Below, piece after piece: positions 3,701 through 61,650 of a DNA stretch of 64,000 bases. Positions within the stretch are counted from its first letter, which is position 1, and each line of letters begins with the position of its first letter. The position numbers and the translations under genes are program-made. Source of the stretch: Tubulanus polymorphus (taxonomy: Eukaryota; Animalia; Nemertea). Under the pieces are notes generated by a model, which worked only from the letters and a program-made list of their open reading frames with translations, had not been told where the DNA came from and did no database searches. The DNA lies in assembly GCF_964204645.1 (NCBI RefSeq), contig NC_134031.1:15735807-15799806 (forward strand). The letters are read 5' to 3'.

Positions 3701-6700
3701 CGAAGTGTCCGAAAAACGACCGGAAACCCGCGTAACCGAGGTCTCCGGTCTGACGCAACGCGGTGACCGCTTCGTGTATGAAATAAGAGTGCGTATTCGT
3801 TTACCCGGAACGAATAACGATTACGTATAGGCAGACGCGCGGGTGTTTCTTAGTGTGTATCACGTTAGTTTCGCAATCACGACAAACCTACAAATGAAAA
3901 CGGAGCATCACCAAATATGTCATTGAAATAACGCAACCAGGTTCCGTGCTAAATCGGCCTACAATCTTCAATAATACAAGATTTCACGTGTCTTCAAAAT
4001 ACCAAACTTAGCAAAAGCTATTACAATAGATGATACCCCGCCAAATTTTTGCTTCAATTTCACCCAAAGCCGAACTTGATTGCATTAAAATCCTGACGAA
4101 ATTCAAATTGTCGCGAGGTATGCGACAGTTTCGAGATAGATGAGAGCGGCATAAAATTGCGTTTAACATAGTTATGTTACGAATACATAGTTACGAAATG
4201 ACCAACTTACGAAAACTAGCAGCGGAAAATGACTTTTAAACATTTCGAATTATGCCGGGATGTTAAAGCCGATGACTGATAATAATAATATACGATAATA
4301 ATAGCGGATTTTGACCCGATAGAAATCGACTTACTTTGATTCATTTGAGCGATATCCGACCACGAATTCGAGTTCGGGTCGTAACATTCACAGCTTTTCA
4401 TTCCGCCTTGACCGCAGTTTCCTCCGATGCAGTAGAGTTTACCGTTCAAAGTGGCCAAACCTGAAATCGAAGAACGGGATATTAGCCGGCCGAAAATAAT
4501 GAACGTCAGTCAAGTGAATGTATGAAAACTCTTCCGAGGCTGTATAGGTGGGAGGAGTCTGGAGGGCAGAGAAACCCTTCAACACATTTCCTGCCAACTA
4601 TGTACAAGCTATTGTGTAGCTAATAGTTCTTATTGACAGATAGATATTTGTACTCAGGCATTTGGAATGACTCAGTTCCAGATTTGCCGGCCATAGGAAC
4701 AAACTCTGCTCCATACTGAAAGTTAATTGGTCAATTTTTAACAATCTCGAGATCTCGAAAGTGGCAACTGTGAAGAAACGGAGCGTGAGCGAGCATGTCT
4801 ATGAGTTCACCCGAAGTTCTGTGCGCTTCTCAATATATACCTGTAGCCTTATATTGTAATACATGTACAGGAGGTTACAAACTTGGAGAAAATATAATTA
4901 ACATTATAGGAAATAAGGTCAGTAAGTGCTGACATCTATCATGAATTACCTGTACTAGCTCTAGTCTGCCGCATGTCGGCTAACGACGACCACTCATTGC
5001 TGACCGGATCGAAGCATTCCAACGATCGCAACTCGGTGCGACTGTTCGACCCGCCGCACGCGTACAGTTTACCGTTCAAACTACACGCGTCGAATCGTCC
5101 TCGCGCGATCGTCATGCTCTTCAGCGGAAACCATTTGTTCAGCGATAAGTCGTACTGTTCGACCATAGCGTAACATTCGCCTCGGTCGTAGCCACCTGAA
5201 ATACAAAATGAGACTCCTCTAAACCTCGACTGAACTTCGTACAAGATATAATCGGTACATGGGCCAGGGTGATCGAAGAAAATGATTTACAAAAAAAAAA
5301 ATATTAGTAGAAGATTAGAGGCTTTCTAATGAAGACCAAGCAAAAACCGAAACGTTGCTACAGCAAGCGCCGAAGGAGTAGAAAAGAGTAAAACAAGAAA
5401 AGAGAAAAAAGATGAAGAATAAGATAAGGAGTTTGAACACTGAGTTCCAAAGTTGTTGGTTAAGTTTGACTCAATAGTTACTATCATTTCATTTCCGATA
5501 AGAATTATAGGCCTGGATCTAAATAATATTCAACGACTCGTACATACCCATTGCGACGATGTTATCTTTAAGCAGGGCTACTCCGAGACCGCTTCGCGCT
5601 ACGCTCATCGGTGCTAGCAATACCAGCGACATCTGACGTGTCAACGTATCGGCGCTGATCTGTCGGGGACTGATTTCTGGCGACGCGCTGCCATTTTTTT
5701 CCGTGCCCGGGTCCATCATGGCGGGCGTCGGTCGATAGTGGATGGATATGGTGGCAAGCTGGTTGTCCAACATGGCTATACATAGACGTTTCTTCTCTAC
5801 AAAAACAGACGATTATCTTCAATAAACTGTTTGTTTGTTGGTCTACGTTAGTTGTGATTGTGCAACCAGGTGCTCAATAATATGAAATCCTAAACTAAGA
5901 ATAAACAAAGTCCCAAATATTCCTTTGAACTAATATTTGAATATATGAAGCGGGTGCATCGGAAGGTGCGACTGTAACTGAGTACAACCAGTTGCTTAAA
6001 CGTAGAACAAGGGCAACTGGCTGGAACTGGAGATCGTCGCTTACCAGTCATGAGCAAGCTCACATCGACACATTCAAGGAACTGATTGTATTCAGCCAAT
6101 TCCTCTCATGCGCCGAAAACTACCCGGCAACTTGTTGTCTCCAGTTTGTCAATGTACGCTAGGCTTTAACTTACAAAATAATTGAAACGTTTTCGACTCA
6201 TTTTATTCCTTATTGCGAGATTCGCATTACATCGCGGACTTCATCGAAGATAAACGGGCGCGGCTCGTAACGGAAAACGCGCATAATTCTCACTTACCCG
6301 AGGAAATGGCGGTGGCCAGAACTCGCCATTCCGGTTCCGCCGGCTTCTCGTCGATATCGCCCGACATCAGTTTGATTTTACGCGGCACGTTTATCGAGTT
6401 GTTGTTATGGCGTCGATGGCTGCTTTCTTTCGTTTTCGACGGAGTAATCTATGAAAAATAAACAACAAGTTTCTAACTTATACGCTTTCGTAGACGCTTA
6501 TATGACACACTTGCAGGTCGAATTTAAAATTCTTTAATTGCTTTCATATCTGACTAATTAATACCCAAACGTGCTTGAGATAATTTGAAAATTTTAAAAA
6601 ATCCGCTCCAATGTGATTGAATAACAGGCATACTGCTTTAGTCTGTCTACACCACGGCGCAGTGTATAGTTAGTTACTAATATTTCATAGACGTTTGTTT

Positions 6701-9700
6701 GACAGGTGCTGCCATCTTTCAATAGAGATAAACTAATTACTAATAACATCATTACACTGCGATGAGGAGTACTAACAAAGTTCGATCACTGATTTATACA
6801 CCGCACTGTAGTGTAGATGTACTGAAAGGGTATAAAAGAGAAATAAACTTGAAATAATAGGTCACAAGATATATTGTAAAGCGAATCAAACTGAAAAGAG
6901 ACTTCAAAGTCCTAAACATGAACTGCACTGGTGGTCACTTTCATTGAACAGCACACACTATTAGATAGGTGGTCATTATAATGCAGTTATTTCAGTTGAT
7001 AGAAAACAAGTTAATCCTAATGCACCAGCGAGCCTATACGGGAGTAATACATGCCCTAGGCAAAATACAAATACATGTACTGTATGCCAGCTACTAACAA
7101 CTGATGTCATAACAAAAACTATAGCTACACCAGGCTCGGAGGGGTACACGACTGTCAGAAAATAAATAATGCAATGCCAGGAATCAGCAAACAATCGAAA
7201 ACAATGACATTCAAAAGACACTCCAGAGAAAATAATTGTGTTCCTACATTACGCATATAAGACGGTATTTCAGGTTGGCTCCATCTCCGAACGCCGGAAC
7301 TGTTACGTCTTAGCTATATACGCCGAGACCGAACGAAATCACATCGAATAGGGAAAATTAACGTTACAATACACAACAATTATTCTTTGAAAAAAATATA
7401 TATATATATTGATACCGCTGTTGAAATATTGTTCTCAAATAAGTTCTCAAAAATCTCCACACGGTTTTCGATTTATTCCGAAGCGCATCGTAAAACGGAA
7501 GGAAGAGCAGGACAAAACCACCAACAGGGTTGAGGATAATGCTCGAGGATTTTATTGCTAAAAGTATCAAATTGTCGAGACCCGAACGCTATATACAGCT
7601 GGTTGAATTAAATTCATAATAATTCACGAATCCAGATAGGCCACAAGCGCCAACGGCATTGATTAATCTTAAAAGACTTCAAACGCAGCTGTTTTTCTAG
7701 TTGGCCAAACGCTGAATATATATGAAAATAATGTTTAAACGTGCCTCTCATGTTTACGCAAACAACTACTCGATATTCGAAAAGTATGAATATTTCAGCC
7801 CGCACAATTTTAGGTCAGGAACCCTTACGCTGATTTATTTTAGGTCAAACTCGTCATCGCAGACAATGTGAACTCCTTATACCTGAAAATCCATGAGACT
7901 TAGTGCCATTAAAGCGCCTGTTATTAGACTAAAATAAATAACTGACTTCATCGCTAGATTCATTTAACAATGGGTTTAAGGGGTGGAGGGTGAACGGAAG
8001 TTAAAAAGAAAGAAAACTTTAGAAACCGTTCCATTTCTGCAAGAAATACCGTCAGAAATTACTTATTAACGCGTAAGCCGGATATCCATTAGGAAACTAA
8101 TTACCTGTCGTTTTTTGCACATGTTCTGGTAGTCCTTGATATATTCAGTGCGTCGTAGTTCGTTAGTGTCGAGGTCTTTACAGTCGCGTAACACATTGTC
8201 GGACGCCAAATACAAAACATTTACCTGAAACACAACAGAAAATACATCCCATAACAATGATTATACGTCAGTGACTATACATTATATAAGGTTATTGGAA
8301 GGAGGTCAAGTTACTATTCAGCTCCTAATCTTTGGAATGAACTAGCTCATAGCATTAGAGAGTCTCCGTTCTCTCAGCCTTCAAATCCACTTCTTTTAAT
8401 ATAAACACCTAAGGTGCTTAATTTTTAACTTGCTCTTTTATAAATGTAGTTTTAGAATGTAAAACGCAGCGGTTATGATTTTACAACCGCACTATATAAG
8501 AAAAGGTATTACTATTATTATCAAATATATATATTACTATGTATCAAATTGAACTTACATGGTCTGTCAAACATTCCCAAGTCGGTTGTTCTTCTAAAGC
8601 TTCTCGAATCCAGTCGACAACGAGGCTGTCGACTTGGTTGTCGTCCTTTTCCATTATCGGAACCTCATCAGCTCCTGAAAGAGAAACAAATATATTTAAC
8701 AACAGGTTCAGAAAACAAGATCTAAAAGAGCTAGGTACTTGTAATGAGTCACATTTATAAAAGACTTGAGTGTAAAAGGTGAAAGATGAAAAACACAAAA
8801 TAATTCGCGAAACATTTGTTTGGGTTTCCGACAAAAAACCATCATCCATTATCGACGAATGATAATCATTCCATTTAAATCTTTCGGTTTTCTCATTGTG
8901 GGCGAGATAAATCTCGCTCATAACAACTCTCGACGTTCTGCAACAGTGGAACTTTTCATTATAACCAAATCGGATACAACGATTCATCGGATATAACTAA
9001 ACAAATAGAATTTCGGGTTACAAGTAAGAAAATTTAATCAATTTCATACTGGATATAACGAACTATCGGTTATAACAAACATATTTTCTGGTCGCGTGAA
9101 GCGCGCTATAACGAGGTTCCACAATTGGGACTTCTATTTTTCACTGAAGACTCTACCAAAAATTCGATTCACTCTAACGGGGAAAAATTCCCAATCCCCG
9201 GAGGTCTGGATTGGGTTGCACTCATATTTTTACGCATAATTCCGAAGCATTAGGCGAACAATACATACGATTTAACACACGTGTTTGTAACTTCATGCCG
9301 TCACTATTCGCGCAGGAAAAAAATTGAAATCATTATTCAGTCCGCCAGCAAATGATATACATATAATATATACATACATACCTGGTATACATATATATAC
9401 ATACATATATTTAGATGAATAAACTATAGGACGACTACAAATGTTCTACAAATCTGTTTCATGGAGACCGAAGCCTCCAGTCTTCAGGAACATTTTATTC
9501 TAACTCCAATGTTCCTAAAGAGTGGAGGCTTCGGTCTCCATGAAACAGATTTGTAGTACATGTAATTGTTGTCCTATAGTTGATTCGTCTATATAAACGC
9601 TGTTGAGCACTCTGTGAATACGTGTAGTTCGACATTGATTATCATTATACATATATTTACATATAATTAATACGTAAAGCTTACCGATTACTTCCACCTG

Positions 9701-12459
9701 TATCCGTGGTAGCGCCATACAGTCATTACTCGTGGCGACGTCGGTGACGAATTTCTTGATGTATTCGTCGCAGGTTTTCGTCAACGACGCGTCCGCGAAC
9801 CCGCTCGCGAACGATCGAATACCTACGACGAGATAATGATAAAGAGAGAGAGAGATGCAGCGAACACCGCATTAACCCTTTAATCGCGAATCGCTACATC
9901 GGCGGACGACGTACCTATACAATTCATCGCGTTCAAATTGTCGGCTAGGTAATTAGAACAAGCTTCGGCCGCGCGGACCATCTTCAACCGCATCGCCATT
10001 TTATAAACAGATTTGATATCGTGCTCTTCTACTTCGAGTCTGAAAGTCAAAAATAGAAAAAGTTGCAATGAAAAAATATTAGGATGCGGGAGACATGAAT
10101 ATAGTTTTATGGACTTAGATAAATTCATCATTTTATGGTCCGATATCTATTAATGATTTAATGCGCTGTTATTCTACGAGATATACGATCAAAAGTAAGG
10201 TCTTGAGTAATCGGCCATAAATCTAGCATAAAATCGCTTGCCACCGTTCAGCTGCGCTCGGCTAGAATATAAACGATCCGCCTAACTACCACAAGCCGAC
10301 AGCCTTTAGAGTTAGACAGATTTTTCCGAACTACATGCCACTGAAGATGTATTTTCTGTTTTTTACAAATGTAAACACCTGATCAATAAGGTAAGTTAAT
10401 GTGGCAAACATATATACATCATACGACCCGCGTTTATAGGCCAAGGTGAAGGAAAGAAGGTGAAGGTGTGATTTCAAGGTTGTTTACTCAAATGAGGTCA
10501 ATTACAGATTTCAACGGAACAGATTTTTTGCGAGTGTGATTCTAAGAAAAATTGCAGAAATACACTTCCCCCCATTTAGAGATTCCCGAGTTTTCCATGG
10601 TTTAACACAAAATTTACCGAGTGAATCTTCAGGCAAATGGGCAAATTTCCTCTTTAAGAAAATGCTACAATTCTTTCATTCTTTTGCGAATCACATATCA
10701 ATAAATGGACTTCCACAATTCAACAAATGAGCTTTCCCTGATTTCTTACAGATACTTCTGACTTCCCGAGGAGCTTTCCAGGTCGATGGCCACCCTGCAA
10801 ACGGCACACGGAAACTTTCCAGGATAGGTGCCAAAAATGCGACGAAACCACGATCGTTATTTTGATTGTAAGCCAATATTCCGATCGAGTTATCTCCTCT
10901 CAGCTCTCTCTCGAGATCTCAAGAGAAATATCTCGGTTATATTTACACACTCCGTGTAATAAATACCTAGACAGTTAGACAGTTATATATGTATAGTTGA
11001 GCTTTCTGCATTAAACAAAACGTCAAAACGGTTGCTAACAAATTATGACGAGTTACCAAAAATATGCTTCGGCGGAAAATGATCGCATTCCGAAAAAATG
11101 TTTTTCGTATAAATGTCGTTTTCGAAATCCGCTGAAGTACAGATGTGCGTAGTTTATTTTCGTAGATTCATTGGCGAAAAAATGAAATTCACTCGGTTTT
11201 GAATGATGAACACTTCAATGCACCAAGTATTAACTAGAATAGCGCTTTAATACCGAGGTGTATCTGTCTACCGTCCTCGAACTACCCAGACCCACTTACA
11301 ACAATAACGCTAATACCGCCTTCCCACTCAAGTATATCAGTGTCTACATTCCCCAAACTAAACACAGCAGCCCTACTATCATAAAATATTGCGCGTCGGG
11401 GTGTAGACAGGTAGAACTTCAGAACAATGGGATCACTGCAGTACAAAATGATTCAGAATTTTATGCAGAATTGGTAAGGACTGAATTATCTGATCAAACC
11501 CGTAGCCTGGATCCTCCAAGGGGGGAAGGTGCAATATAAACTACAAGTGGACCGAATCAGCATTTTTTGAGCTTATGGCCTACAACCCTAGTTTTGAATT
11601 CGACGTTTTCTAACAGAAAATACATACATTATATAGATGTACATGTATTCGAAACTCATGAATAAAACGTATTTCAACAGAAATAGGAACGATCTTTTTC
11701 TTTCAAGGGGACGCACCAACTCTGGTTATGGACCTGCTGATTATATAGAAGTTCCAACCCTACACTCGGATCGCAGGAAACCAACAACACAGGACCCATC
11801 GGGAATCCGCAATTCCCTGATATTTCCTTGACCTTAACCAAATTATGAAATATCTTCAGTGTTGGGCGTTTCTTCTCAAGAGGTTGCGTTCCTCATGCCT
11901 TTGGTATCCAGCTAGAGCAAAAAGATACCAAATATTTATATTCCCCACCTCACCCCCCTGACTTCAAAATCAGATTCAGAATCCCCTGGTTTTCGCCGAC
12001 TGCCTAAGAAGAACCGTTGGCTACAATGCTCTATTATACTCACTTGCCAGTGTAGACGTAATTGACGAGCACGTCGAAGTGTTTATAGTCGAAGTTGTTG
12101 AGTTTGTAATGCGAGTTCGGAACGCTTTCGTCCAGCGAAAACAGCTCCATCAGATACCGGCTCGACGACGCGAGCACGGCTTTGTGCGCGCAGATCTCGT
12201 GCGAGCCGACCTCCAGCGTCACGTCGCAGTACTGTCCGTTTTTGCGCAGCGTGTTCAAACACTGCAGTATGTCGGAGTGGTGTCGTTGGTCTTGAAACGT
12301 CAATTTCGTGACGACGGCGTTTTTGCGTTCGGTGTGCGCCGCGCCGTCGACCTCCGCGTCGTCGTCGTCGCCGTTCATCATTTGCGACGTTCCGTTTTTC
12401 AGGTGGTTCATCTTGAATTCGGCCGGTTCGTTCAACGACGACATCTTACAACTGTTCAT
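742..12459 (-). CDS. IVNS1ABP: Influenza virus NS1A-binding protein homolog (BTB-BACK-Kelch), 11 coding exons, about 718 aa
   Basis: Coding exons 12459-12044, 10039-9915, 9822-9685, 8674-8559, 8224-8105, 6448-6298, 5796-5548, 5195-4950, 4460-4335, 2120-1947, 1037-742. All introns are GT-AG and phase-compatible (sum 2157 nt). BTB: LNTLRKNGQYCDVTLEVGSHEICAHKAVLASSS. NS1-BP-like linker: LPRIQVEV, VNVLYL. Kelch repeats: MSVARSGLGVA..GGYDRGEC, GRFDACSLNGKLYACGGSN, GGCDSWNCLNSVE, RRGAGVA, GGFNGKLFLNTAE. Non-coding 5' exons not resolved. Confidence 0.93.
3301..3591. mobile_element. Non-autonomous piggyBac-like MITE (family P), copy 1
   Basis: About 280 bp, homologous to 6540-6833, 50882-51160 and 60930-61254. 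Ends TTAACCC... and ...GCACTGAAAGGGTAA. Confidence 0.7.
6540..6833. mobile_element. piggyBac-like MITE (family P), copy 2
   Basis: Shares internal blocks (GATAATTTGAAAATT, GTCTACACCACGGCGC, GCTGCCATCTTTCAATAGAGATAAA) and the end ACTGAAAGGG with the other copies. Confidence 0.65.
8275..8520 (+). mobile_element. Truncated L2-like LINE 3' end
   Basis: Degenerate ..FSY.AP.LWN.L...IR.S.S...FK.. C-terminal signature followed by ..GCACTATATAAG and a (TAT)n tail. Similar in type to 41722-41930. Confidence 0.5.
9412..9592. repeat. About 180-bp palindrome made of two divergent hammerhead copies
   Basis: 9412-9493 is the reverse complement of about 9508-9592. The plus-strand copy has core CUAAAGA. Confidence 0.85.
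9439..9495 (-). ncRNA. Type I hammerhead ribozyme motif, near-canonical, in IVNS1ABP intron (sense strand)
   Basis: Minus strand reads AAAUGUUC-CUGAAGA-C-UGGAGGC-UUCG-GUCUCCA-U-GAA-ACAGAUUUGU-A/GAACAUUU. Stem I is a perfect 8 bp, core CUGANGA and GAAA are intact, stem II has a cUUCGg cap, stem III is ACA/UGU, and the cleavage triplet is GUA. Confidence 0.8.
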
Positions 12460-12559
12460 CAAGATTTCTGCGAAGACAAGAGTTTTAAATACATTAGAAA
12501 TAACGAAAACGAACATCTTTTCATTAAACAGCAAAACATTTCTATTTCTATTTACTACA

Positions 12560-12702
12560 GGGGCCAGTTGCACAGTTGCGACTCAAGTCCAAAAGTGGTC
12601 TCAAATCGTACTGACTGGTCTTAAGTTTTTAGATTGGCTATAGAACAAAGTTGGTCTTAAGACTGGTCTTAAGTCTAAGCCATGACTATGCAAGCGGCCC
12701 TG
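12560..12702. mobile_element. About 140-bp MITE (family A; TIR GGGGCCAGTTGCA..TGCAACTGGCCCC)
   Basis: Homologous copies at 25835-25976, 45657-45768 (reverse), 54865-55011 (reverse) and 56971-57114. Internal (AG)ACTGGTCTTA sub-repeats. Confidence 0.8.
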
Positions 12703-13627
12703 GGTCTCTACAGATCGGTCATTCCTGGATATGAGGATTTTTCAAGGAGAAAGTTCACAAATTTCAAGAAGTGTCCGCATCACTTTCATATCCCAATTAC
12801 AATAGACTCCTCCTAAATCAGTACTGTTTATCTTGGTATTTGATGGTTTTGTAAGCTAATTTTTCATCCTTTACACTAGCTAAACTTGGCATCTAATTTG
12901 GTAATCACCTGAACAGGGTACACATAAATCCTGGTCCCATCTTTATCAATTTAGGTGTAGGTTAGCTACAGGTTAGCTGTACAACTACAAACATTTCTAA
13001 TTGCCTTTTTCCCAAAGTTGAAGGAATTTTAAGAGGGTCCCTACAGATCAGTCATTCCAGAATTCAAGGACTTTTCAGAATTTTCAAGGAGAAAATTTCA
13101 AATTTCGAGGAGCGACTGCATCACTATCATATCGGCAGTAGACTCCTCCTAAATTGGTACTGTTTATGATCAGTGTTTTAATATTTTTTTCCAAAAAAAA
13201 AAAATGTTCATATTTCTGTCATAATTTTCGATTTTTTTATCAGCGAAAAGCTAGTCGTCTTTTCACTTAATTTGAACTCGATTCAACTCAAAATTGCAGC
13301 ACTTTCTTTTTTCCACGGTCCTTCCAAGATTTATGCGCGCAGACGAATAATGAAAATTTCAAAACTTTTCCCCCTACCTTTTTAAAGCACCTGTTTAGGA
13401 AACCTGTTTTTCTGTCCCTTCTTTCGCCCTTCAATTATTTTTCCGGCAAAAAAATCCTCCCAGTAATTTTGAAAAAAAAAGCCTAGTAATATCCATTAAT
13501 TCCGCTTATTTTTTAATGCGTACATATGAAACATACGAACGAATGACAAATTGCTTTATCGAAATACGAGCAGAAATATACGCTCTAGATTCGATTCAAA
13601 TATTCAGATTCAAATATTCGATTCATA

Positions 13628-13693
<66 letters not shown>
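13628..13693. repeat. (TA)n microsatellite
   Basis: Directly visible. Similar (TA)n tracts at 15105-15159 and 16434-16548. Confidence 0.95.
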
Positions 13694-13700
<7 letters not shown>

Positions 13701-14029
13701 CGCTTCGCAGTTGCCCCGATCACGATCACGCGGTTCATTCCGGGAAAAGATACCGATGAGAAATGTACGAATCCTGACCTTTCGGATACGGGAAACATCT
13801 AATTTCTTCTTTAAGACGCGTGTTCTATATCAGGGTGCCTACAGATCAGTCGTTCCAGAATTCAAGGAGTTTTCAAGGAGAAAATTTCAAATTCGAGGAG
13901 TGTACGGATCACTTTCATATCCCAATTACTGCAGACTCCTCCTAAATCGGTACTGTTTATCTCAGTAAACTATTTAATTCAGTGGATTGACTGTAGTGAA
14001 CCGATATAAATCTGAATATAGTTAACGAA

Positions 14030-14191
14030 TAAAAACCCACAGTGGATTTGTCGAAAACGTTTATTACCTAAACAGTTGCGAGGTTAATTCTAAACCTCAC
14101 AATAAATCGATAAATTCTTGTGTTCCCTGATGATGTGGTTAGAATAACCTCGAAACTATTAGGAAATAAACTACTGTGGGTTTTTTATCTT
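14030..14191. mobile_element. Palindromic hammerhead-containing element (Penelope pLTR-like), degenerate
   Basis: Ends ATAAAAACCCACAGT / ACTGTGGGTTTTTTAT. Plus strand 14121-14166 reads UUCC-CUGAUGA-U-GUGGUUAGAAUAACCUC-GAAACUAUUA-GGAA. The left arm is an inverted partial copy. Same family as 40150-40415. Confidence 0.65.
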
Positions 14192-15118
14192 TCAATGGAA
14201 TCTGTGTGTATAATAACTAGGCCGAAAACCTAAAAAAATTCCAATCGCCTATTTCTCAAAATTCAAGGACTCTACAAGGAGTTTTTGGCATTTCGCTCAA
14301 ATTCGAGGATATTCAAGCACCTCTAAAATAATTTTCTCGGATAAGAAGGAGTTTGCGAGGAGTCGTAGGGACCCTGTATATAAACGACGCGCTCGCGTTC
14401 CCCCGGAAAAATCAACCGCGACGATAACCAACCTACCTTCCGAATTCTGCCTTTTGACTGGAGGAGGAAACGGAAAATAGGTCATATCCTCGGTCCTGGT
14501 GTAAAACCGCGACGCGGACATAATCCGAAATTATCGCCGGCTCCGATCGACGACGACGATTTAGTCGTTAACAGTCGGAAAACGTTCTCCATTAATGCCG
14601 CAAAGTCAAACAGTTTCGTCTGTCAATAGCAATAGAAATGTTGTAAACCTCAAATGCCAACCAGTTCTAGCATCTAGTCAATTACTCAATAGAAGGTCTA
14701 CGTGTTGAGTAACTAAGCGATAAAAACACAAACAACTCGAGTGTCGAACAGACGTTCTCGCGAAATTCGAGTCCGGAACGAGTATATTTCCACGTTCGAT
14801 CAACTCACACACTCAACTCAACTCACGACACGCCGGTATTACGCAAAATAAAATTTCGTTTATCGATCTTCTTTTATCAACAACGCTGGAAATTCATTTT
14901 CCGTAAAATGCCGAATAGCTCTTCGCCCACAGAACCTATAGAACTAGCCGACGAGAGAGAGAGAAAGAGAGTATACGAACCGCGAAACGTATAAACTTAA
15001 CCTTGATCGTAAATGAATAGCTTTGTCAGCGGCGTTTCAATGCGAATATGAATATTTTCACGCACGTGAACATAAAGTTAAACAAAAATGTCCATACTTA
15101 TGAATATATATATATAAA

Positions 15119-15162
<44 letters not shown>

Positions 15163-15691
15163 TAACGATTTCCACGATTATGTTACGCGTTAAATAAACG
15201 TTCTCGTCGTTCCTTCCAGTCTGTGACGCTCTCTTCTCGTCAAATTAACATTCGATGATTGATAGATCGTTAAATATTTGATAAAGCGATATAAAAAAAC
15301 CGGTGTCTCTCTACGTACGCGCGCGCGCAATCTGACGACTTATGAATATTCCTGACGTTTTGTTGTTAAACGCATAATTCAAGGCGACGACGCAATTATC
15401 ATGTGGTCGTAATCGCATTGCCGAGGTTGAATAGAATTCGCACTTAATGCGGAACCGCTAAAAATGAAGTTCAGCAGGGGGCCGGTGAAATCTCTTCGGC
15501 GTAACCCCAGTAAGAAATTATTCTTAAGTCCTATTCGGATCATTCTAAATTTCGTTATATCCGACTTCGTTATAACGAGGTTCCGATGCGGCAGGAAAAA
15601 ACCTTTTCGAAAAAATTTTCTCGAGTTCGCCTTCCGTTCCAATATATCAAATTATGACAAACTGATCAACAGGAGACAAGTAGGCCTAATA

Positions 15692-15930
15692 GGATAAAAA
15701 CCTACTATGTACGAATTAAAAGAATTTCAAAATCGAGAATATATTTATTCAAAAAATCTAAAATGAAATACACGACGTTTCGATCTCACCCTAGAGATCA
15801 TCGTCAGGTGTGGTGATCTCTAGGGTGAGATCGAATCGTCGTGTATTTCATTATAGATTTTTTGAATAAATAAATTCTCGATTTCTAAAATTCAAATTCT
15901 TTTAATTTGTACACAGTGGGTTTTTATCTT
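15692..15930. mobile_element. About 240-bp foldback element with a minimal type I hammerhead (minus strand, 15811-15770)
   Basis: Near-perfect palindrome. Minus strand reads ACAC-CUGACGA-U-GAUCUC-UAGGGU-GAGAUC-GAAACGUC/GUGU, with a palindromic ACGU stem III typical of Penelope-associated minimal hammerheads. The opposite arm has a broken core (GAAU). Confidence 0.75.
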
Positions 15931-16478
15931 ATCATCCGTTCTCCAAGTTTGAGTGTGATAATCGTTCTAACAAGTAGGCCTGTTCTTTAGAAAGTCAAAA
16001 GTCCAAAAGACGGTCGTTAGGGCCTAGTAATTCGGTCACCTCTAATAGATAAATAGACAGGGAACTCGCGAGCTTTTCCAGGAACGAAGATGACAACAAT
16101 CTATCCCCCTTTGACTGGTTCTTTTTTGACGTAAATAAATCCCAGGGGCCCACTTCGTGACGTTCGTCGACAAACCGGGACGAATTTGAATAGGACCGAC
16201 GAAGTAACAGGACTATAGAATTAACGTAACATAAACCTTTCAAACCGATCAGTCTAGAGAACCGTGCCGGTCGATATTTCACCGAACTACTTCATATATT
16301 TACTACGTGTAAATGTCGACTCGAAATCGTTTTAGAGGCCACGGCGTAAACAATGAAAATAAGAACGGCTTCTCCGGAAAACCGGCTGAATCTAGTTTAA
16401 ATTCAGAAGACATTCTACGCTGGAAATCAGCGGATATATATATATATCTATGTATATCTATATATATATCTATGTATA

Positions 16479-31216: not shown

Positions 31217-32534
31217 GTGGCTGCAACCAGCTATTTTGAAAAATCCGTCGTTAGGTGTATCTCGATCTTGTGACCTCTCGATCTTGAAGACTAGAGAAAA
31301 TCGACACAAGACCAAAGAAAAGTGCAATAAAACACCGAATAGTTTCTTTTTTCTCAGATAATTTTTAATAGTCTTTAATCACCAACTCTAAAGATCACGT
31401 CAGTAAATTGATGTCAGTATTTATAAAACAGTGTGAACGCGATTGTTAAACGCTTAGTCGTCATATTAGTCAGTCAAGGTGAAATATGCTGATTTAAATC
31501 TATATGTTTATATTAATTCTATGGTTTAGACATATCGAGCTTAAAACTATATGTGTTTTCAATAAAAAACTCAGTGTTTTCTATTACCCGTAAACATTTC
31601 ACATTTACAACAACACACTGCTATTTTCTTTTATGTACATCAATAGTAACGCGATAACAAAATATATTCTGAATTAATCTTCTTAAAATACATCTAGCAT
31701 TTACTTTCATTCAACAAAATTAAAACCCACTATATAAACTATATGCAATGGGATACCCGCAGTGCTACTGTGGCAATCCAGGATTCCACGTATGACAGGC
31801 GAGGATCCGCCAGGTTCGCTAGTAGATAGTTGGTCGTCCGTATTCGATTTCTCCTTACGTTTTGATTAAATCTGAATGAACCCCTTAAATGAATCAATCA
31901 TTTATGAAAAATATGCCGATATCCGAGTAGAAGAATGAAAGTTGTGTATATTTGGTGAGTGCTGTGATAAGATTCAGGAGTATGATAGATTCAGTTCAAA
32001 GTTTTGACAATGGACGACCTACTGCTCGTCACGCTACCGGCTGGGATAGCTGGTTATGCGGGTTCCCTATTTCAAAGATTAAAAGCGAATCATTGCCTAA
32101 CGAAATTTATTTTATCAGTCTATCAAAACGGAGTCGATTTTAACGAATCTCTTTTTAATATTTTGAATTTATTGAAATACATCTAGTGGGTTTTAATCCT
32201 TATCTATTCTCAACGTCTGCGTGAAATTGGCTTTTTCATTCACTTTTAATCTCACGCCATTTTAGCGCCGCGTTATCAGACTAGAATTGCGGAACCTTTT
32301 TGTAGCGGATTCTCGTTCTCGGATTATATCTATTTTAATACTTGGTACCAAAAACCGCGGTTTAAGTTTGTTATTCTTATTTATTGTAATTTTTTGCGTT
32401 CATTTCTGGCTGGTAATAATCGTATAGTTTGTCGTGGCAGAAATCAGGATCTTCGCAGCGAGCGAAGTTTTTTCGTAATAGCGCTATAAAAAAACCCTTT
32501 GTCATCATCATTCCTTCAATCATGTTCTTCAATT

Positions 32535-34958
32535 TCATTTTATGAATATTTCGGGTGATTTTGATTCCACCAGTTCCGGTTGACGTTCAAAAGCTTTCCG
32601 TTTTCGCCTAGCCCGAAATTCAGGTGACATTGATTCCACTAATTCTGGTTGGAGTTCGGGAGCATTCCGTCTCCGCCTGGTGCGAAATTCTGGTGACATT
32701 GATTCCACTAATTCTGGTTGGAGTTCAGGAGCATTTCGTCTTCGCCTGACCCGAAATTCTGGTGACATTGATTCCACTAATTCTGGTTGGAGTTCGGGAG
32801 CATTCCGTCTCCGCCTGGCGCGAAATTCTGGTGACATTGATTCCACTAATTCCGGTTGGAGTTCGGGAGCATTCCGTCTCCGCCTGGTGCGAAATTCTGG
32901 TGACATTGATTCCACTAATTCTGGTTGGAGTTCGGGAGCATTCCGTCTCCGCCTGGCGCGAAATTCTGGTGACATTAATTCCACTAATTCTGGTTGGAGT
33001 TCGGGAGCATTCCGTCTCCGCCTGGTGCGAAATTCTGGTGACATTGATTCCACTAATTCTGGTTGGAGTTCGGGAGCATTCCGTCTCCGCCTGGCGCGAA
33101 ATTCTGGTGACATTGATTCCACTAATTCCGGTTGGAGTTCGGGAGCATTCCTTCTGCGCCTGGCGCGAAATTCTGGTGACATTGATTCCACAAATTCTGG
33201 TTGGAGTTCGGGAGCATTCCGTCTCCGCCTAACCCGAAATTCTGGTGACATTAATTCCACTAATTCTGTTTGGAGTTCGGGAGCATTCCGTCTCCGCCTA
33301 ACCCGAAATTCTGGTGACATTGATTCCACTAATTCTGGTTGGAGTTCGGGAGCATCCCGTCTCCGCCTGGCGCGAAATTCTGTTGACATTGATTCCACTA
33401 ATTCTGGTTGGAGTTCGGGAGCATCCCGTCTCCGCCTGGCGCGAAATTCTGTTGACATTGATTCCACTAATTCTGGTTGGAGTTCAGGAGCATTCCGTCT
33501 CAGCCTGGCCCGAAATTCGGGTGACATTGATTCCACTAATTCCGGTTGGAGTTCAGGAGCATACCGTCTCCGCCTGACCCGAAATTCGGGTGACATTGAT
33601 TCCACTAATTCTGGTTGGAGTTCAGGAGCATTCCGTTTCAGCCTGGCCCGAAACTCACCTATCAATTCAGGCTCAATTACCGGTGCATTCCGAGCCACTC
33701 TCGAGCGGAACTCGGTCCTGATCTCGGGGGAGCTGTCTGTATCGACCAGTTCTGTCGAGCTATGACGTTTTCTCCTGTGCAATTCAGGCGATTTTTCCGA
33801 TGGATCGGAATATGTAAATTCGGGTTCTAATTCAGGCGTATCGCGGCGCCTTCGTCTCGTTTGGTGATAGAGTTCCGGAGAATAGATTATTTCCGGTTGT
33901 TGTCCACTTACAAATCGTATTTTTCTAGCAAATTCTGGTAGATATTCTGTATACAAACTACGTCTATCCCTCCGCGATCCTTTTGATTCAACGGCTTGCA
34001 GTTCAGCGATATTTTCTTCGCGTTTATCGACTGACTTGAGTTTTCCAACAGATCCATTTAGGTTTTTCTTCAACTTTCTGAGCTTAGCCACAAACTCTTG
34101 CGTCTTTCTGGACGCGGGATTAAGAACGGTGAGGTTAGTCCCCGATCGCGCGTGTCTCATTCGATTTCTCCCGATCTTCGTCACAAATTTCTTCACACCT
34201 GAAATCGATGCTTCGTGTACATTCTTTTGATTTGTCAACATCGTCTGGCCGCTCGTCTGGCTGTTTGTCTGGATGACGAAATCTAAACGTTTTCGCGATT
34301 GCAACCGATTTCTACCGAGCAGCTCTGGCAACAAATGACGACGGTGACCGCCAGTCATTTTGCTACTCTTCGAGTCGTATTTCTCTTTCGTTTCGCCATT
34401 AACTGCAAGTGACAAAAAAACCTCAAACTTAGTATTCTAAATGGCCACACCCGGTTTTTGACGTGTTAATGATGAGATTGTAAGCAGAGCACTCAGTATA
34501 CCAGCTAAGCCTGACTGGTCCCCGCCGCTTAATTCAAAGCAGAAACCCTCTAACAACTGAATCAATCGCCATATACTCAAAGGAGTAGTGATCGGCGCAT
34601 GGGATTGGATTAGAATCCAGGTTCCAAGTTCAATATCCAAGGGTATCTAGGTTTACAGCATTATGGACATCCCATTTTGTCAAATTTTCTTACGGAATTT
34701 GTTTTACCCGAAATGACAGTTGGCGGTGTTGTTGAATCTAAATTGTTGTTGATCAAAATTAAGAAAACATTTTTGTCTAAATTTTAAATGACGTAGCAGA
34801 ATACATAAAACAATTACGCATGTTGTTTCATGTTTCATGTTGAGTGTTCTATCCATATAACGGAAATCGAAATTTTGTTCGTACTTACCACATGTAAGAA
34901 TCAACAACACCAATGCAGAGACGCTGAATATCCAAGACTTCAATCCCGTATTAACCAT
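32535..34958 (-). CDS. Secreted multi-copy peptide precursor (prepro-polyprotein) with 15-16 tandem 23-aa repeats, about 645 aa
   Basis: Exon 1 is 34958-34889 (MVNTGLKSWIFSVSALVLLILTC, donor G|GTAAGT). It splices in phase 1 to exon 2, 34402-32535 (acceptor TTGCAG), giving a signal peptide ending ..LTCVNG|ETK. Many KR/RR/RxRR sites. Repeat unit NAPELQPELVESMSPEF-R[AVT]RRRR. Confidence 0.88.
32560..33650 (-). repeat. Coding tandem repeat, 69-bp unit x about 15-16
   Basis: Plus-strand unit GAAATTCTGGTGACATTGATTCCACTAATTCTGGTTGGAGTTCGGGAGCATTCCGTCTCCGCCTGGCGC, with no frameshifts across the array. Confidence 0.97.
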
Positions 34959-37818
34959 TTTTCAGACTTTGTGATTCGTCTTGTCAGCTGTAAAATACAC
35001 AAATGAATCGTGAACACGAGTCAGTTCTCGTTTTATATAGAATGTCGGAGATTTTTTCCTTTCGTCCGCTTCGTTTTGCATCGCGTATTTTTTGTACCAA
35101 AGTCGACCGACAGCGCGTTGTCCGGACCGCCTCCATCAGTTTGGAAGTTCACATAAAAAATTTCAGTTATTATGATAATAAACATATGGATAGATAGACT
35201 AATTAGGCGACTAGTCAAAACAAAAGGCAGTCTGTATAAATGATCTAGTGTTAATAACAAATACTGTCTAACATCATATGGTTCTTACTAGAAAAGAAGA
35301 TCGGATTTGAAAATGTTTAAATTCTCCTGTGTATGAGATTATTCTTATGCAAGCAGTTTAAAAACTTGTCTTTCGTGTTTCGTGTCGTAGAAATATTGCC
35401 AAAACAAATAGTCAACAAACATCATAAATAAATCACGAGGAAATAATGGTTACGTAAAATTGGAAGTTAGTCAAGAATGAAATGAATTTCTGATACGGAA
35501 TGTCATCCACTTTATGGGACGAAATAAAATTGATCTATCTAGGATTTTTGCGTTTACGTTAAATGGTCAAACCTTTAGAAAGGCAAGCGACAAGGAGAAA
35601 TTGAAATGCCATCGTTTTCGAAAGTATCAAATCTTTTAAAAAGTTTAAAGACATTTCTTTATAAATGAATAATGATTAACGTAATGTTCTTACCTTATAT
35701 TTTAGTTTTAAAATCCCGTTTTTTTCTTGAACACTCCCTAAAGGCTTAGTCGATTAAACTTATATGAACAAAATTGTTCTCAATAATTGTGCGATGGTAT
35801 CTGCCGATTTGCCGGGGGTGGTGTGATGCGTGGGAGTGTTTCGTGAGCAATGGGTCATGATTTATCCGTCTGATTTGACTAACACATTCCTCATCGGGTT
35901 GAACTAAACTTTTGAATTACCTGAAAGCCATTCCTAGAAAACGAGTTTTCATTCTCAAAAGAGGAAGAGGCCTTCATCCATCAACTGAACAATGGTACAA
36001 AACCGATTCATCGCAAATACAATCAAAATCTTTCCAGACAGTTTTCGAAACTTTAATGTGTACAACAACTCATAGCCCATTTGCCTACTGACCACAAAGG
36101 ACCAAAGGCGACCTGGATATTTTTGGGAATAGGAAATTTATTTGAATGATAATTTACATATAAAAGGATGATTGAGTGTATTTCTAGAAGTGTCGGCTTC
36201 GAAGCAAACAGAATTTCACGATAATGCCCCACTTCAGAAAGCTGATAGAAGGTTCCCGCGTCTCCGCGCACGTGCACTCGCTCTCGTCTGCACTTTCGTG
36301 ACCTTTGCGTTCTCTCCGCGATATCGTTACATCATAATGTTCCACGAATGTTGCTCTAGATAGGCTACTGACGACGTGAAGATTAATGATCGCACGATGC
36401 CCCATTGGCGATCTAAACATCTTAAATGAATCAATGGAATGCATTTCTCATAAATTACATATCATTCGATGCTGACATCTCCTCCTTAACATATTTCTCG
36501 TTACAAAACACGACTAGAGGTATTTCGGGTTGCACTGGGGCCCTAGTAATATATTCCATCTTTCCAAAACTTTTCCGAAATATTTCATAAGGCGGGTGTG
36601 AGACGTGCTCGGATTAGTGTGGTAAAACTTCGCGTTTGTAAATAATCGAATCCGGATTGTTCTCTCGCTTCTGTTATGGCATTCTTTTTACTTATGAGGT
36701 GCCAAAGATATTCTGGAATCTGACAAGCAAAACCGACGAGAACAAACTAAAACAACATTCCAAACTATCCGTCAATTAATTTGATCTATCGGCAGCAAGT
36801 AAAACATTTTTGGAGAATTTTCCAGTAGGAATTTTTCCGATGATAATACAATAATATTTACGATCAATTCAAGGATAGAATAGCGCACCTCCCCAAACCC
36901 TGCGTCATCAGTTGAAAATGAAACTGTAACAAAAATTCTAGAACCTTTTCTAGGGTTGTTTGCAAAAGATTTTTAATTGTAATCTGGTCTAAAACTGACA
37001 CTATGCTATGCCGTTTTTCATGGATGGAAGAATGTAACCTACATGATAATATTCTACATTTTGCTTCTAATTCCCGCTCATGTGAATGGTTCTTAACCCT
37101 GGAAACAGTTAAGACCCAAAAAATTTAACAAAACCCAGACCGCTCTCGACATGTCTCCCCTAAATCAAGTGTCCTTGTTGCTCCCTGCTCACGGTTAGAC
37201 ATTTCATTCATTATTTGCAGGACAGGTATAACTAATCATCGAGGATCCTGCGTTTGATCATACGTAGTAGAAGCGTCTCAGGGGCGTAGTGATTAAACTA
37301 CTGTTTAAGAAATTATTCATCATTGATAAGAATTCTAATAATTAAACTCTGACTGTGATAAAGTTTGAAACACTTCATAGCTAGCAACCAAAATTGCCAA
37401 TAACAGCTTTCAACAATTTCAAACTTTCAACAATGTACTCTATTTGGATACGTGTATTATCTGACGGTTGAAGAATTATTCTCAACTCATCGAAGTTTAA
37501 CAGTTCAAGGGCGATGAACAAATGGAATTTTTTCGAAGTCGTCAGCGTATTTTAAATTCAATGCACCGTATGGTTGATTGAAAAGTTAGAATTCATTTTT
37601 ACTAGTAGGATAAATTAGGAACGAGGAAAGAAACATGGAGAGTTAATAATCTAATTTGGTAGAGAAATATTCCTTAATTGATTCAATTAATTAAATGGAA
37701 GACAGTGTACGGTACTGATGATCGATTTTTCTAAACGACCGTCTTGCCACCGGCTGAGCGCGATTGTCAGAGATGAACAGTTTTAAGATCTGATATACAG
37801 CAATATTTTTGTGGCCGC

Positions 37819-38693
37819 TCAAGACGATTTCTTTTCGAAAATCAAATTCTGCAATTCTTTTCTGATTTCTTTGCCCGTCATCAGATACAGGTAGAGATTA
37901 AACGAATAGTTTATCAACAAAATATCGGCGAGGGCGGCGAAAATGTTTGCTGATTGTGGATTTGTTCCGACGAAAGCGTTTATTAAAGCAGCAGGGAATG
38001 TTGTAACCATGAAGAAGATACACAGTAGCAGAACCAACCTGGTTACCTGGTTTGAGTATCTCGATGCTCGGGTTGTTTCCGATTTAACTTTTTTTCTGAA
38101 TAAAGCGATAGAAGTTATTGCGGACATGATAGTTAACGCAATAAACGGGGCTATGCAGATGATGATAGACGACAGCAAAGGCTGGCTAAATGCGGGCCCA
38201 TTTCTAATACAACCGTTGTCACTAACGTCGATAGTTACGAATAAAAAACTATGAATCAGCGCTAGGAAGCAGATAACGGAGAAGCAGAGTTTAGAAGCGG
38301 TAGTCGGGTTCCAGAAACGAGGACCTCTAAACGGAAAACAAACGACACACATTCGCTCGGTAGCTACGAGAACTAGCGTCCATGGACTGCTCGAAAGGCC
38401 AACTGTTACATAATACTCAAAAAACATACATTGAATTCGTGTTGACGGTTTGATCAGTAATTTCCTCCCATAAAATGCATAAGATATAAAGTTGATGTAT
38501 CTCATCGTATAATTGAGGAGAACCGAAGTGTCGCAGACGGCTAGTTGAACGAACATACGACTGAAAGAACGTCGCCATAGTTTACGTTGCCGCATCACTA
38601 CTACGATCAGCAGATTACCGATGAATCCTAGAATAAAACAAAGACTGACGATTGTGAGAAACAAGAAATTAACTTTAATAAATTATTTGACGC
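37819..38693 (-). CDS. Class A (rhodopsin-like) GPCR, FMRFamide/sex-peptide-receptor-like type; 5' end unresolved, possibly a pseudogene
   Basis: Seven hydrophobic segments with GFIGN (TM1), LAVCD (TM2), C..ATERMCVVCFPF (TM3), APF (TM5), FMVTTFP (TM6) and NYSFNLYLY (TM7). The ORF track start is TTG, not ATG. There is an acceptor TTTTTTCGCAG ending at 38694, but an in-frame TAA lies at 38685-38683. Confidence 0.8.
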
Positions 38694-42199: not shown

Positions 42200-45100
42200 A
42201 AAATACCACAATGAACTATGAACTATGAAGGACTCGTCCAGAGCCTGAAGGTGGGGGCGATTTATGCTAGCAAGCGACTTTCCTACAAGATCAGAAATGA
42301 CATAAGCGTATTTAAAGAGGGTAAATTCGAATCCTGTTTTATAGAAATAATTTCTAAAACCGGAAAAAACGCTAGAAATATTATTGTTGGAGAACTATAT
42401 AGAATACCGGGAACTAGCGAATCTGATTTTTTGTTAGATTATCAAGGCATACTAGAAAAAATAAATCACGAAAGAAAAGATATAATCATTGGGATGGACC
42501 AAAACTTGGACCTCATCAAATCTGAAACCCACAGAAACACTGCTAGATTTCTTGATTTGAATCTCTCCTATGAAGTAATACCAACAATACTACGTCCAAC
42601 TAGAATCACACATAATACAGCCACCCTCATTTATAATATATATATAAGCTCAAAACTAACTGACCATTATAGATCATGCATCATCACAACTGACCTATCA
42701 GAACATCTGCCCTGTTATATATCAATTAAAGATAGGAACTACAAAATGAAAACAAAGGAAACTAAATTATTTCGAAGATTCAATCGAAGCAACTTAACCA
42801 ATATTAATAATGAACTCTCTGAAATTGATTGGGCTGTAATTGAAAACATGAACAGCGATGATGGGTATAGCTTTTTAATTGAAAAGCTCACTCCATCTTT
42901 AGATAGACATGCCCCCCCGACTGAAAGGAAAATTGGGCATATAAGGCTAAACAAAAATGATACCTTGTTTCTCCGCAGCGGCCGGGTCATTTTTGTAAAA
43001 TATGATAAAATTAATAAACAGTTCATTTCTATAGCGGCCGGGTCTGTTATGGTAAAATTGATCACGATTTAAAAAAAAGTAATGTATAGGGTAGATAGGC
43101 GGCCGGCCGGGTCAACATTTAAGCTCAGCAGAGCGGAGAAACAAGGTATCAATTTTTTTAGCCTAAAGATAGACGAACCATGGATGACACATGGTCTACT
43201 AACATCGTCAAAAAAGTGTGATCGTTTATATCGTAAGGTACTTGGTGCTCCAAAAAGTGATCCAAAATACGTAAGATATCTTAATTATCGAAATCAGTTG
43301 AATTATTTAAGAAGAAGAGCAAAGCATAGTTATTATGCGAATAAGAAACTTAGTTTTAGAAATAACAGTAGAAAGTTATGGGATTTACTAAAGACCACCA
43401 TAGGCAAACATAATGACAAATCATCTACTATTGAAAATTTTTCGCATTTCAGCGTGATAATCGCCGTCCCCAAAATTGATGGAAAAATTGAAAAAGACCA
43501 CAAAAAAATTAGTGACTCACTGTCTTTGTTTTTTAGTCATATAGGAAAAGAGTATGCCACTAAAGTCCCAACTTCTAAGCATTCATTTCAAGAATACCTC
43601 AATATCCATAACAATATTAACATTTTCTTTAGACCCACTGACACTAATGAGATCATTTCTTTAGTGAAATAATTACCAAATAAAAGTAGTACTGGTTTCG
43701 TTAACATTAGCAATAATCTCCTAAAACAAGTAATTTATACTATAGGCCTATGTGATCCGTTATGTACAATATTTAACAATTCATTAAGAGATGGCGTAGT
43801 ACCCAAATTAATGAAAATTGCAGAAGTTATTCCTATCCACAAAGGTGATGATAAATCCCAAGCAACTAACTACAGGCCTATCTCACTTTTACCCGTAATA
43901 TCTAAAATACTAGAAAAAATAGTTCACAACAGGCTATATAACTTTTTTTATTACGAACAACTTACTCTACAGCAGCCAATATGGGTACAGAGAAAATCAT
44001 TCAACTGCTCAAGCAATACTTGAATTAACCGGAAATATAATTAGTAGCTTCGACAATGGTAATAACACAATTGGAGTCTTCCTTGATCTGTCTAAAGCGT
44101 TTGACTCGCTCGATGTCCCAACGTTGATATACAAATTAGATAAGTATGGAATAAGCGGAATTCCATTGCAATGGTTGAAAAGTTACCTCAGTGAAAGGAG
44201 AATGTATGTAAAGGTCAACGGAATCAAATCAAATCTAACTAAAGTCGAATACGGAATTCCTCAAGGCTCTATACTCGGACCACTGCTTTTTCTTATATAT
44301 GTTAACGATGCCCATCAAGTTTTAAAATCCTGTAAAAGTATATTATTCGCAGACGAGACTAGCATATATATTACCGGAAAGAATCTTAACACTATTTTAG
44401 ATCTTCTGAAAGATGACCTATCTACACTGATCGATTGGTTCCATGCTAACAAATAAACAGTCAATTTCAGGAAAACTAATTGCATGATTTTTAGGCCCAG
44501 AAGTAAAAGTTTCCAAACAGATATAGATCTCATATTTGGTACTGAGAAAATAAGATCAGTAAAACAGTGTAAATTTTTAGGAGTACTTATTGATGAAAAT
44601 CTATCTTGTGAACAACAATTCAAACAAATCTGTTCAAAAATCAATAGAAACTTGTATTTATTAAGAAGAATAAAAAAATTTATACCTGCTTGGAGTAAGA
44701 AACTGCTGTATTATGGCTATATACATACACATTTATCTTATGCAGTGACATCGTGGGGCACTCTTCTCTCAAAAAAGCAAATAGACACCATTTTCAAATT
44801 GCAGAAAAGGGCAATCAGATATATCGATAACAGACGCTATAATGCCCCCACATCACACTTATTTAGAAAATATGATATAATAAAATTTGAAGACATAATA
44901 AATTTAGACCTCGCAAAAATTGGCTACAAATACTTCGAAGGAAAATTGCCCACCCCGAGCATTGTTCCAACATAACCAAGTAAACCACATACATAACACA
45001 AGATCAAGAAATTATCCACAATCTGCCCGTCACAAAACGAATATGTTCAATAAATCGTTTCTTAACAAAGTTCCAGTCATTTTGCAAACAATCGATAACA

Positions 45101-47940: not shown

Positions 47941-61650
<13,710 letters not shown>

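Follow-up and report, generated by a model that had tools for sequence, protein, structure and literature searches.

Multi-copy peptide precursors of ribbon worms have been catalogued by Thiel et al. (2021; PMC8557429), who describe about 1,300 precursors in 72 groups and name Tubulanus 64 times in the main sequence list. The catalogue includes pedal peptides 1-3 and the ND peptide, for which a restriction to nemerteans is stated. Acidic non-amidated peptides in multiple copies, ND and AxxxDF, do occur in this phylum, and AxxxDF has been confirmed by mass spectrometry in Lineus (PMC8557429). The present work deals with a minus-strand gene in a stretch of 64,000 nucleotides of the Tubulanus polymorphus genome (assembly GCF_964204645.1, contig NC_134031.1, positions 15,735,807 to 15,799,806 of the forward strand), hereafter called the window and numbered from its first letter. 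The gene has three exons, is spliced and transcribed, and encodes a secreted repeat protein.

Judged by its sequence, the gene is an orphan of known architecture, that is, a predicted signal peptide followed by tandem peptides between candidate convertase sites. The reading we favour, with a confidence slightly above even, is that it encodes a lineage-restricted secreted polyprotein, from which furin-type convertases would release some 15-20 acidic, non-amidated peptides.

Gene structure and transcription

The RNA support for the gene comes from one contig-level run (X3). The parts of the gene are the following:

35694..35828 (-), exon 1, non-coding 5' exon; third piece of X3 contig record 22, donor ataag/gtaaga
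34988..35693 (-), intron 1, GT...AG; absent from the X3 contig, splice sites read in the sequence
34889..34987 (-), exon 2, with 29 nt of 5' untranslated region (UTR), the ATG at 34958 and the signal peptide; X3 contig
34403..34888 (-), intron 2, GT...AG, phase 1; absent from the X3 contig, present in X1 and X2, which are DNA-like runs
34402-32535 (-), exon 3, large coding exon; X3 contig junction and open frame
31811..32534 (-), 3' UTR; X3 contig record 18 on 31811-32594 and reading of the sequence

Contig record 22 of the public run X3 (1,021 nt) maps to 33607-34402, 34889-34987 and 35694-35828 with exact GT-AG junctions. The depth of X3 is zero within both introns and present in every bin of the repeat array; runs X1 and X2 cover the introns and behave as DNA. 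Only when read on the minus strand do the introns begin with GT and end with AG, and the transcript is therefore from this strand. A plus-strand open frame of 361 amino acids (aa) was rejected as an artefact of the repeat, which has a period divisible by three.

The coding part of exon 2 (34958-34889) has 70 nt, equal to 23 codons and one base, and its GT donor (34888) is joined in phase 1 to an AG acceptor that precedes 34402, which rebuilds a Val codon. Translation starts at 34958, because an in-frame TGA sits two codons upstream of this ATG, within the 5' UTR. Downstream, the minus-strand open frame 32535-34415 comprises 626 aa and ends with a TGA stop at 32537-32535. The initial annotation, made from the sequence alone, had placed the signal peptide on a separate exon (34958-34889) spliced in phase to 34402, and the X3 contig contains exactly this junction; RNA spliced across 34889/34402, on which that model had been made to depend, is thus present. 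Its coding exons and phase-1 splice hold, but the non-coding 5' exon (35828-35694) had been overlooked. This exon has no ATG and is joined by splicing to 34987. The transcription start may sit upstream of 35828, that position being merely the end of the X3 contig. A TATA-like motif near 35030 was discarded as the promoter, as the exon in which the transcript contig begins is located some 700 bp upstream of it.

In the 268-Mb genome neither a second copy nor a retrocopy was found, and the other matches there are stop-rich repeat noise. The gene is single-copy, and the spliced X3 contig is not mimicked by a retrocopy because the genome holds none.

Concerning the 3' end, X3 coverage continues for at least 724 nt beyond the stop, reaching at least 31811, and AATAAA motifs lie near 32385, 32172 and 32110. 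An interspersed repeat at about 31650-32030 lies in or just past this 3' UTR, and all contigs break there. Its word depth in X1-X3 is 1,500-16,000 versus 20-60 nearby, with many differing joints and loose ends. The Rfam search gave no matches in the window.

Architecture of the encoded protein

The signal peptide, called from the sequence of its own exon and from Kyte-Doolittle hydropathy, has Lys7 in the n-region, a hydrophobic core of 15 residues and a C-V-N-G end (maximum of 2.9 over 11-mers). The predicted cleavage context is Val at -3 and Gly at -1, followed by Glu. The rest of the protein is encoded by exon 3 and is divided as follows:

33951..34402 (-), basic N-terminal pro-region; aa 1-150 of the exon-3 frame, net charge +22, isoelectric point 11.2
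33633..33950 (-), diverged units with PE[LFI] motifs; four or five units, each followed by a basic site
32598..33632 (-), repeat array of 15 units x 69 bp (23 aa); from translation, Tandem Repeats Finder and X3 depth
32535..32597 (-), terminal diverged unit KAFERQPELVESKSPEIFIK (20 aa) and TGA stop (32537-32535); from translation

Each unit of the array consists of an acidic 17-mer, with the consensus NAPELQPELVESMSPEF, and a linker R-[AVT]-R-R-R-R (variants R-[AVT]-R-[RL]-[RK]-R). The 17-mer contains four Glu and three PE[LF] motifs, has no Cys, Gly or basic residues, and carries Pro as the third residue counted from either terminus. Nine of the 15 peptides match the consensus exactly and the remaining ones deviate at one or two residues. 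Tandem Repeats Finder reported a period of 69 bp over 32550-33653, with 16.0 copies, 93% matches, no indels and a score of 1809. The S-P-E triplet of each unit fits, as a matter of speculation, the S-x-E pattern of secretory-pathway kinases.

The diverged units read SLYTEYLPEF, FVSGQQPEIIYSPEL, DTPELEPEF...SPEL and NAPVIEPELIGEF. They are bounded by the basic sites RDRR, RKIR, RRRRR, RRKR, RVAR and RLKR, nearly all of which contain R-x-x-R. The pro-region before them is predicted to be disordered or loosely helical and is the most polymorphic part of the gene.

Two G-R-N-R motifs (...PELLGRNR and ...TKIGRNR) were observed in the pro-region, at about 34160-34330 (-), exon-3 aa 25-80. If cut, they would permit C-terminally amidated products, which is a weak suggestion; the region is polymorphic.

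Three features expected of secreted propeptide precursors are found together in this gene: an N-terminal cleavable signal peptide, as read from sequence features; repeated units flanked by convertase sites (15 array units plus the diverged units); and expression as the predicted mature mRNA, since X3 record 22 crosses both introns. Most of this architecture had been anticipated by the initial annotation. The basic pro-region and the listed diverged units appear in the translation, as do the 15 near-identical units (15 x 23 aa) with one terminal unit of 20 aa and the linker form R-[AVT]-R-[RL]-[RK]-R. The composition of the 17-mer agrees with the four Glu and the lack of Cys and of an amidation Gly described there, and the proposed precursor layout, a signal peptide with units flanked by basic sites, is borne out by the sequence features and the spliced transcript. 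The block charge of -4/+5 per unit was likewise recovered when computed for the array.

The exon-3 product has a net charge of +36 and lacks Cys and Trp. The array has a net charge of +12 over 345 aa and a charged fraction of 0.37, with +5 blocks of 6 aa alternating with -4 blocks of 17 aa. An AlphaFold2 single-sequence model of the first 260 residues gave a predicted local distance difference test (pLDDT) of 54 and a predicted template-modelling score (pTM) of 0.19, and no folded domain is predicted. The protein could instead be secreted without cleavage as a block polyampholyte whose -4/+5 blocks would drive self-coacervation or binding of charged polymers in mucus, in a tube lining or in an adhesive. 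The charged fraction, the near-neutral array, the perfectly periodic charge segregation and the disorder indicated by the model are what a coacervating secretion protein would present. This explanation also accounts for the surplus of Arg, since five per linker are beyond the need of a protease site, and it makes the variable A/V/T position harmless. Tubulanus species are tube builders, which also speaks for it, and a pair of orphan repetitive open frames of the polyprotein type is seen about 73 kb upstream in the same genome. Nevertheless, such a protein would expose 20 or more R-x-[K/R]-R sites to the ubiquitous furin on its way through the Golgi, and to remain uncut it would need these sites to be masked. 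The basic positions are nearly all Arg (1 Lys in 75) and not a mixture of Lys and Arg, and the composition lacks the richness in Gly, Tyr/3,4-dihydroxyphenylalanine (DOPA), Cys or Ser that is typical of marine cements and tube proteins. Furthermore, the R-x-x-R spacing persists in the diverged units despite their low charge, and its retention even where only three basic residues are left (RKIR, RVAR) fits selection on protease sites over charge alone. For these reasons an uncleaved polyampholyte is considered unlikely.

Search for related sequences

No Pfam family matched the gene product, and no homologue was found by a word-indexed search of 5.8 billion proteins, in the ESM Atlas or in JGI metagenome contigs. 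A phmmer search of 1.84 billion representatives gave 22 weak matches. The five that were examined are unrelated repeats with a period close to that of the array, and none of the five resembles a secreted precursor or has the PEL/PEF-type motifs of the unit. Moreover, 23 strings from the unit and linker did not occur in a related context in the 27 supplementary files of the nemertean neuropeptide catalogue (PMC8557429), and a full-text literature search for the peptide strings had no occurrences in the papers searched. At the level of titles and abstracts, the nemertean mucus and toxin proteomics papers gave nothing applicable to T. polymorphus. Similarity to bilaterian or spiralian neuropeptide families was not found in Pfam or, by the string search, in the 72 orthology groups of PMC8557429. 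As for pedal peptide/orcokinin, the string search of the PMC8557429 supplements gave no sign of membership; no motif alignment was made. The earlier statement that the sequence was not recognised as any bilaterian neuropeptide family therefore stands. A described precursor family, which would have counted against the initial annotation, was not matched by Pfam, phmmer, the word search, the ESM Atlas or the catalogue strings.

These results bear on whether the gene is a classical neuropeptide or hormone precursor, which would be neuronal and matured by PC1/3 or PC2 inside dense-core vesicles, and whose 17-mer would act on a G-protein-coupled receptor (GPCR). The general architecture does match multi-copy spiralian neuropeptide precursors, and nemerteans have non-amidated acidic multi-copy peptides; the presence of a divergent class-A GPCR gene on this strand some 2 kb upstream (37819-38664) is suggestive at most. 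However, the gene is not among the roughly 1,300 catalogued precursors, of which 64 are T. polymorphus entries; the catalogue was compiled in part by looking for patterns of repeated peptides flanked by basic sites (PMC8557429). No orthologue was found, whereas in most bilaterian neuropeptide families conservation reaches across at least one phylum. In addition, the linkers do not resemble the KR/KK sites with acidic spacers that are seen in the FMRFamide and HIGA precursors of T. polymorphus, and the peptide has neither an amidation signal nor a conserved C-terminal residue. Taken together, a neuropeptide precursor of the classical kind seems quite improbable here.

Indications of constraint on the units

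Among the 15 units, the synonymous divergence (pS) is 0.154 and the nonsynonymous divergence (pN) is 0.041, a ratio of 0.27. By part, pN/pS is 0.27 for the peptide and 0.35 for the linker. The five Arg positions of the linker carry Arg in 73 of 75 cases and Lys in 1 of 75, with codons varying among CGG, CGC, CGA and AGG. Nearly all linker variation falls at its second residue (A/V/T), the sole non-Arg position.

The reference was also compared with the alleles in other runs. The coding allelic differences listed (n = 23) comprise 12 synonymous and 11 nonsynonymous ones, and among these listed differences the two parts of the protein behave as follows:

N-terminal region, aa 17-143: 10 nonsynonymous, 5 synonymous, and a 9-nt in-frame indel
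Unit region, aa 150-247: 1 nonsynonymous, 5 synonymous, no other difference

This allelic pattern fits a loosely constrained pro-region and constrained units, although the numbers are small and the units non-independent, so that it can be supportive only. The in-frame indel lies near 34260 (34252-34268, about codons 45-50 of exon 3), inside a QTSGQT duplication. The 9 nt are present in the reference and missing from all three runs, and several nonsynonymous differences are nearby.

Units that are 93% identical in DNA are what a recent expansion predicts, and the gene could be a young, fast-evolving orphan, i.e., a coding minisatellite that grew by unequal crossing-over and is translated, with units that have no specific selected function. 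A single-copy gene with no homologue in the searched databases, and with a highly polymorphic N-terminal region that includes an in-frame indel, would agree with such an origin. The older diverged units argue otherwise, as the pattern of PE[LF] plus a basic site has outlived their sequence similarity. Synonymous differences also exceed nonsynonymous ones both between units and between the unit-region alleles listed. The gene is also expressed, with an intact open frame, signal peptide and splice sites. We regard a translated minisatellite of this kind as very unlikely.

Predicted processing of the precursor

From the sequence we infer cleavage, trimmed ends and a role after export. The signal peptide would be removed, probably after ...C-V-N-G. 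Furin-type proprotein convertases would then cleave at the R-x-R-R-R-R linkers and, on either side of the older diverged units, at the R-x-x-R sites, and the C-terminal arginines would be trimmed by a carboxypeptidase. This would release about 15 copies of an acidic (-4), Cys-free, non-amidated peptide of 17 residues, or of 19 residues if the R-[AVT] stub stays; the bare 17-mer would be expected if the single Arg after Phe also serves as a cut site. Four to six related PE[LF]-type peptides would be set free too, and all of them would leave the cell as extracellular effectors.

Several observations are in line with this route. The sequence speaks for working cleavage sites, since all unit boundaries, those of the diverged part included, have a basic site that is nearly always R-x-x-R, and the Arg residues persist while their codons change synonymously. 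Each R-x-R-R-R-R linker holds two overlapping R-x-[K/R]-R sites, and the proprotein-convertase P-domain was found at 7 or more loci (at least 7) in the genome. A precursor with 20 or more R-x-[K/R]-R sites is unlikely to traverse the Golgi uncut. Pro near peptide ends is the usual shield of secreted peptides against exopeptidases, and the Pro near both ends of the 17-mer would shield the product. The all-Arg sites without spacers point to constitutive furin-type processing and not to the neuronal KR type. A classical neuropeptide role is ranked below a generic exported peptide effector because the sites are all-Arg and spacers are missing; as far as the sequence can indicate, a neuropeptide seems no better supported than a peptide secreted by a gland.

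On the other hand, some points weigh against cleavage into peptide effectors. A cut after the last Arg, with trimming to a non-basic residue, would leave the most variable position (A/V/T) as the C-terminus, and a variable C-terminal residue is unusual for a receptor ligand. The five Arg per linker exceed the need of any convertase, and the catalogued T. polymorphus precursors are cut at KR/KK and have acidic spacers. Much of the resemblance between units may stem from recent unequal crossing-over, which makes the between-unit pN/pS weak as evidence. No orthologue that could show conservation of the 17-mer between species was obtained in the protein and metagenome searches. Finally, run X5 (2015), taken by guess to be RNA, has no contigs at the locus, a negative that carries little weight.

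A bolder extension of furin-type release, which we hold to be rather doubtful, is that the gene would be the founder of an undescribed, nemertean-restricted family of acidic, Pro-bracketed, non-amidated signalling peptides (pheromone or neuro/endocrine), with about 15 copies per precursor and a dedicated receptor, that was missed by the 2021 survey.

Other features of the window and its surroundings

The features below were found apart from the precursor gene:

37819-38664 (-), intronless open frame of 281 aa, a divergent class-A GPCR (Pfam 7tm_1, 4.8e-12)
12040-12570 (-), exon with a BTB/POZ domain (5e-18)
51199-51720 (+), exon with the kinesin-associated DUF3694 (1.4e-6)
42218-44975 (+), four consecutive open frames of 284, 196, 110 and 163 aa

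The GPCR lies about 2 kb upstream of the first known exon of the precursor, on the same strand. Opsins are the closest of its solved relatives (only about 1e-6), and it has ERM in place of DRY. In the 42218-44975 region the open frames of 284, 196 and 163 aa have no Pfam matches, and the region could represent a mobile element or a gene that lacks annotation. Outside the window, about 73 kb before it (contig positions about 15659600-15662000, (-)), two adjacent open frames contain a unit of about 47 aa that is repeated 4-5 times and consists of an acidic half, then a K-rich half, with KR sites. They were rejected as relatives of the precursor, their sequences being unrelated to it.

Implications

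If the peptides are made, they would be a new lineage-specific secreted peptide of ribbon worms outside the catalogued families. A peptide of 17-19 residues with no Cys and no required modification is readily synthesised and could therefore be tested on behaviour, muscle, microbes and orphan receptors. Should the full-length protein (about 70 kDa) remain intact, it would represent a very regular block polyampholyte that is natural and genetically encoded, with relevance to coacervates and biomaterials. In both cases, the gene shows that the signal-peptide exons of repetitive secreted proteins are overlooked by gene calls on this genome.

Comparison with described systems

The ND, AxxxDF and pedal peptide precursors (PMC8557429) resemble the present protein in their many tandem copies of short, acidic, non-amidated peptides between basic cleavage sites. 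Among the catalogue entries examined, the AxxxDF entry of Lingula has its signal peptide at a complete N-terminus, as here, whereas the ND entries are internal fragments (PMC8557429). The units of these precursors have 4-6 residues (LWND, HGDD, AKFNDF) or else carry the pedal-peptide motif, and their sites are K-R, whereas here a 17-mer is followed by the six-residue R-x-R-R-R-R. AxxxDF has mass-spectrometric support, whereas the present peptides are predicted from the gene and its transcript. The FMRFamide and HIGA precursors of T. polymorphus are similar in being large and in having tens of copies. However, they combine KR/KK/GR sites and acidic spacers with basic or amidated peptides, whereas in the present protein the peptide itself is acidic, there are no spacers and all sites are of Arg.

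Further afield, Drosophila Baramicin A and honeybee apidaecin share a signal peptide, tandem short peptides, R-x-[K/R]-R or RR sites and a non-neural effector role. Their products are cationic or Pro/Arg-rich and infection-induced, in contrast to the anionic peptides predicted here, and phmmer gave no related sequence. The fungal precursors of the alpha-factor type also present a signal peptide, a pro-region and tandem identical peptides released by proteases of the Kex2/furin family, but they have KR sites and X-Ala/X-Pro spacers removed by dipeptidyl aminopeptidase, and they belong to another kingdom, with no homology. Regarding the possibility of an uncleaved polyampholyte, the model is given by the Pc cement/tube proteins of Phragmatopoma, which are secreted, disordered, highly charged and repetitive. 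There, the charges are on separate proteins (poly-phosphoserine versus Lys/Gly/Tyr-rich) without convertase motifs. Here, both charges alternate in one chain, and the basic blocks, unlike those of the Pc proteins, are consensus furin sites.

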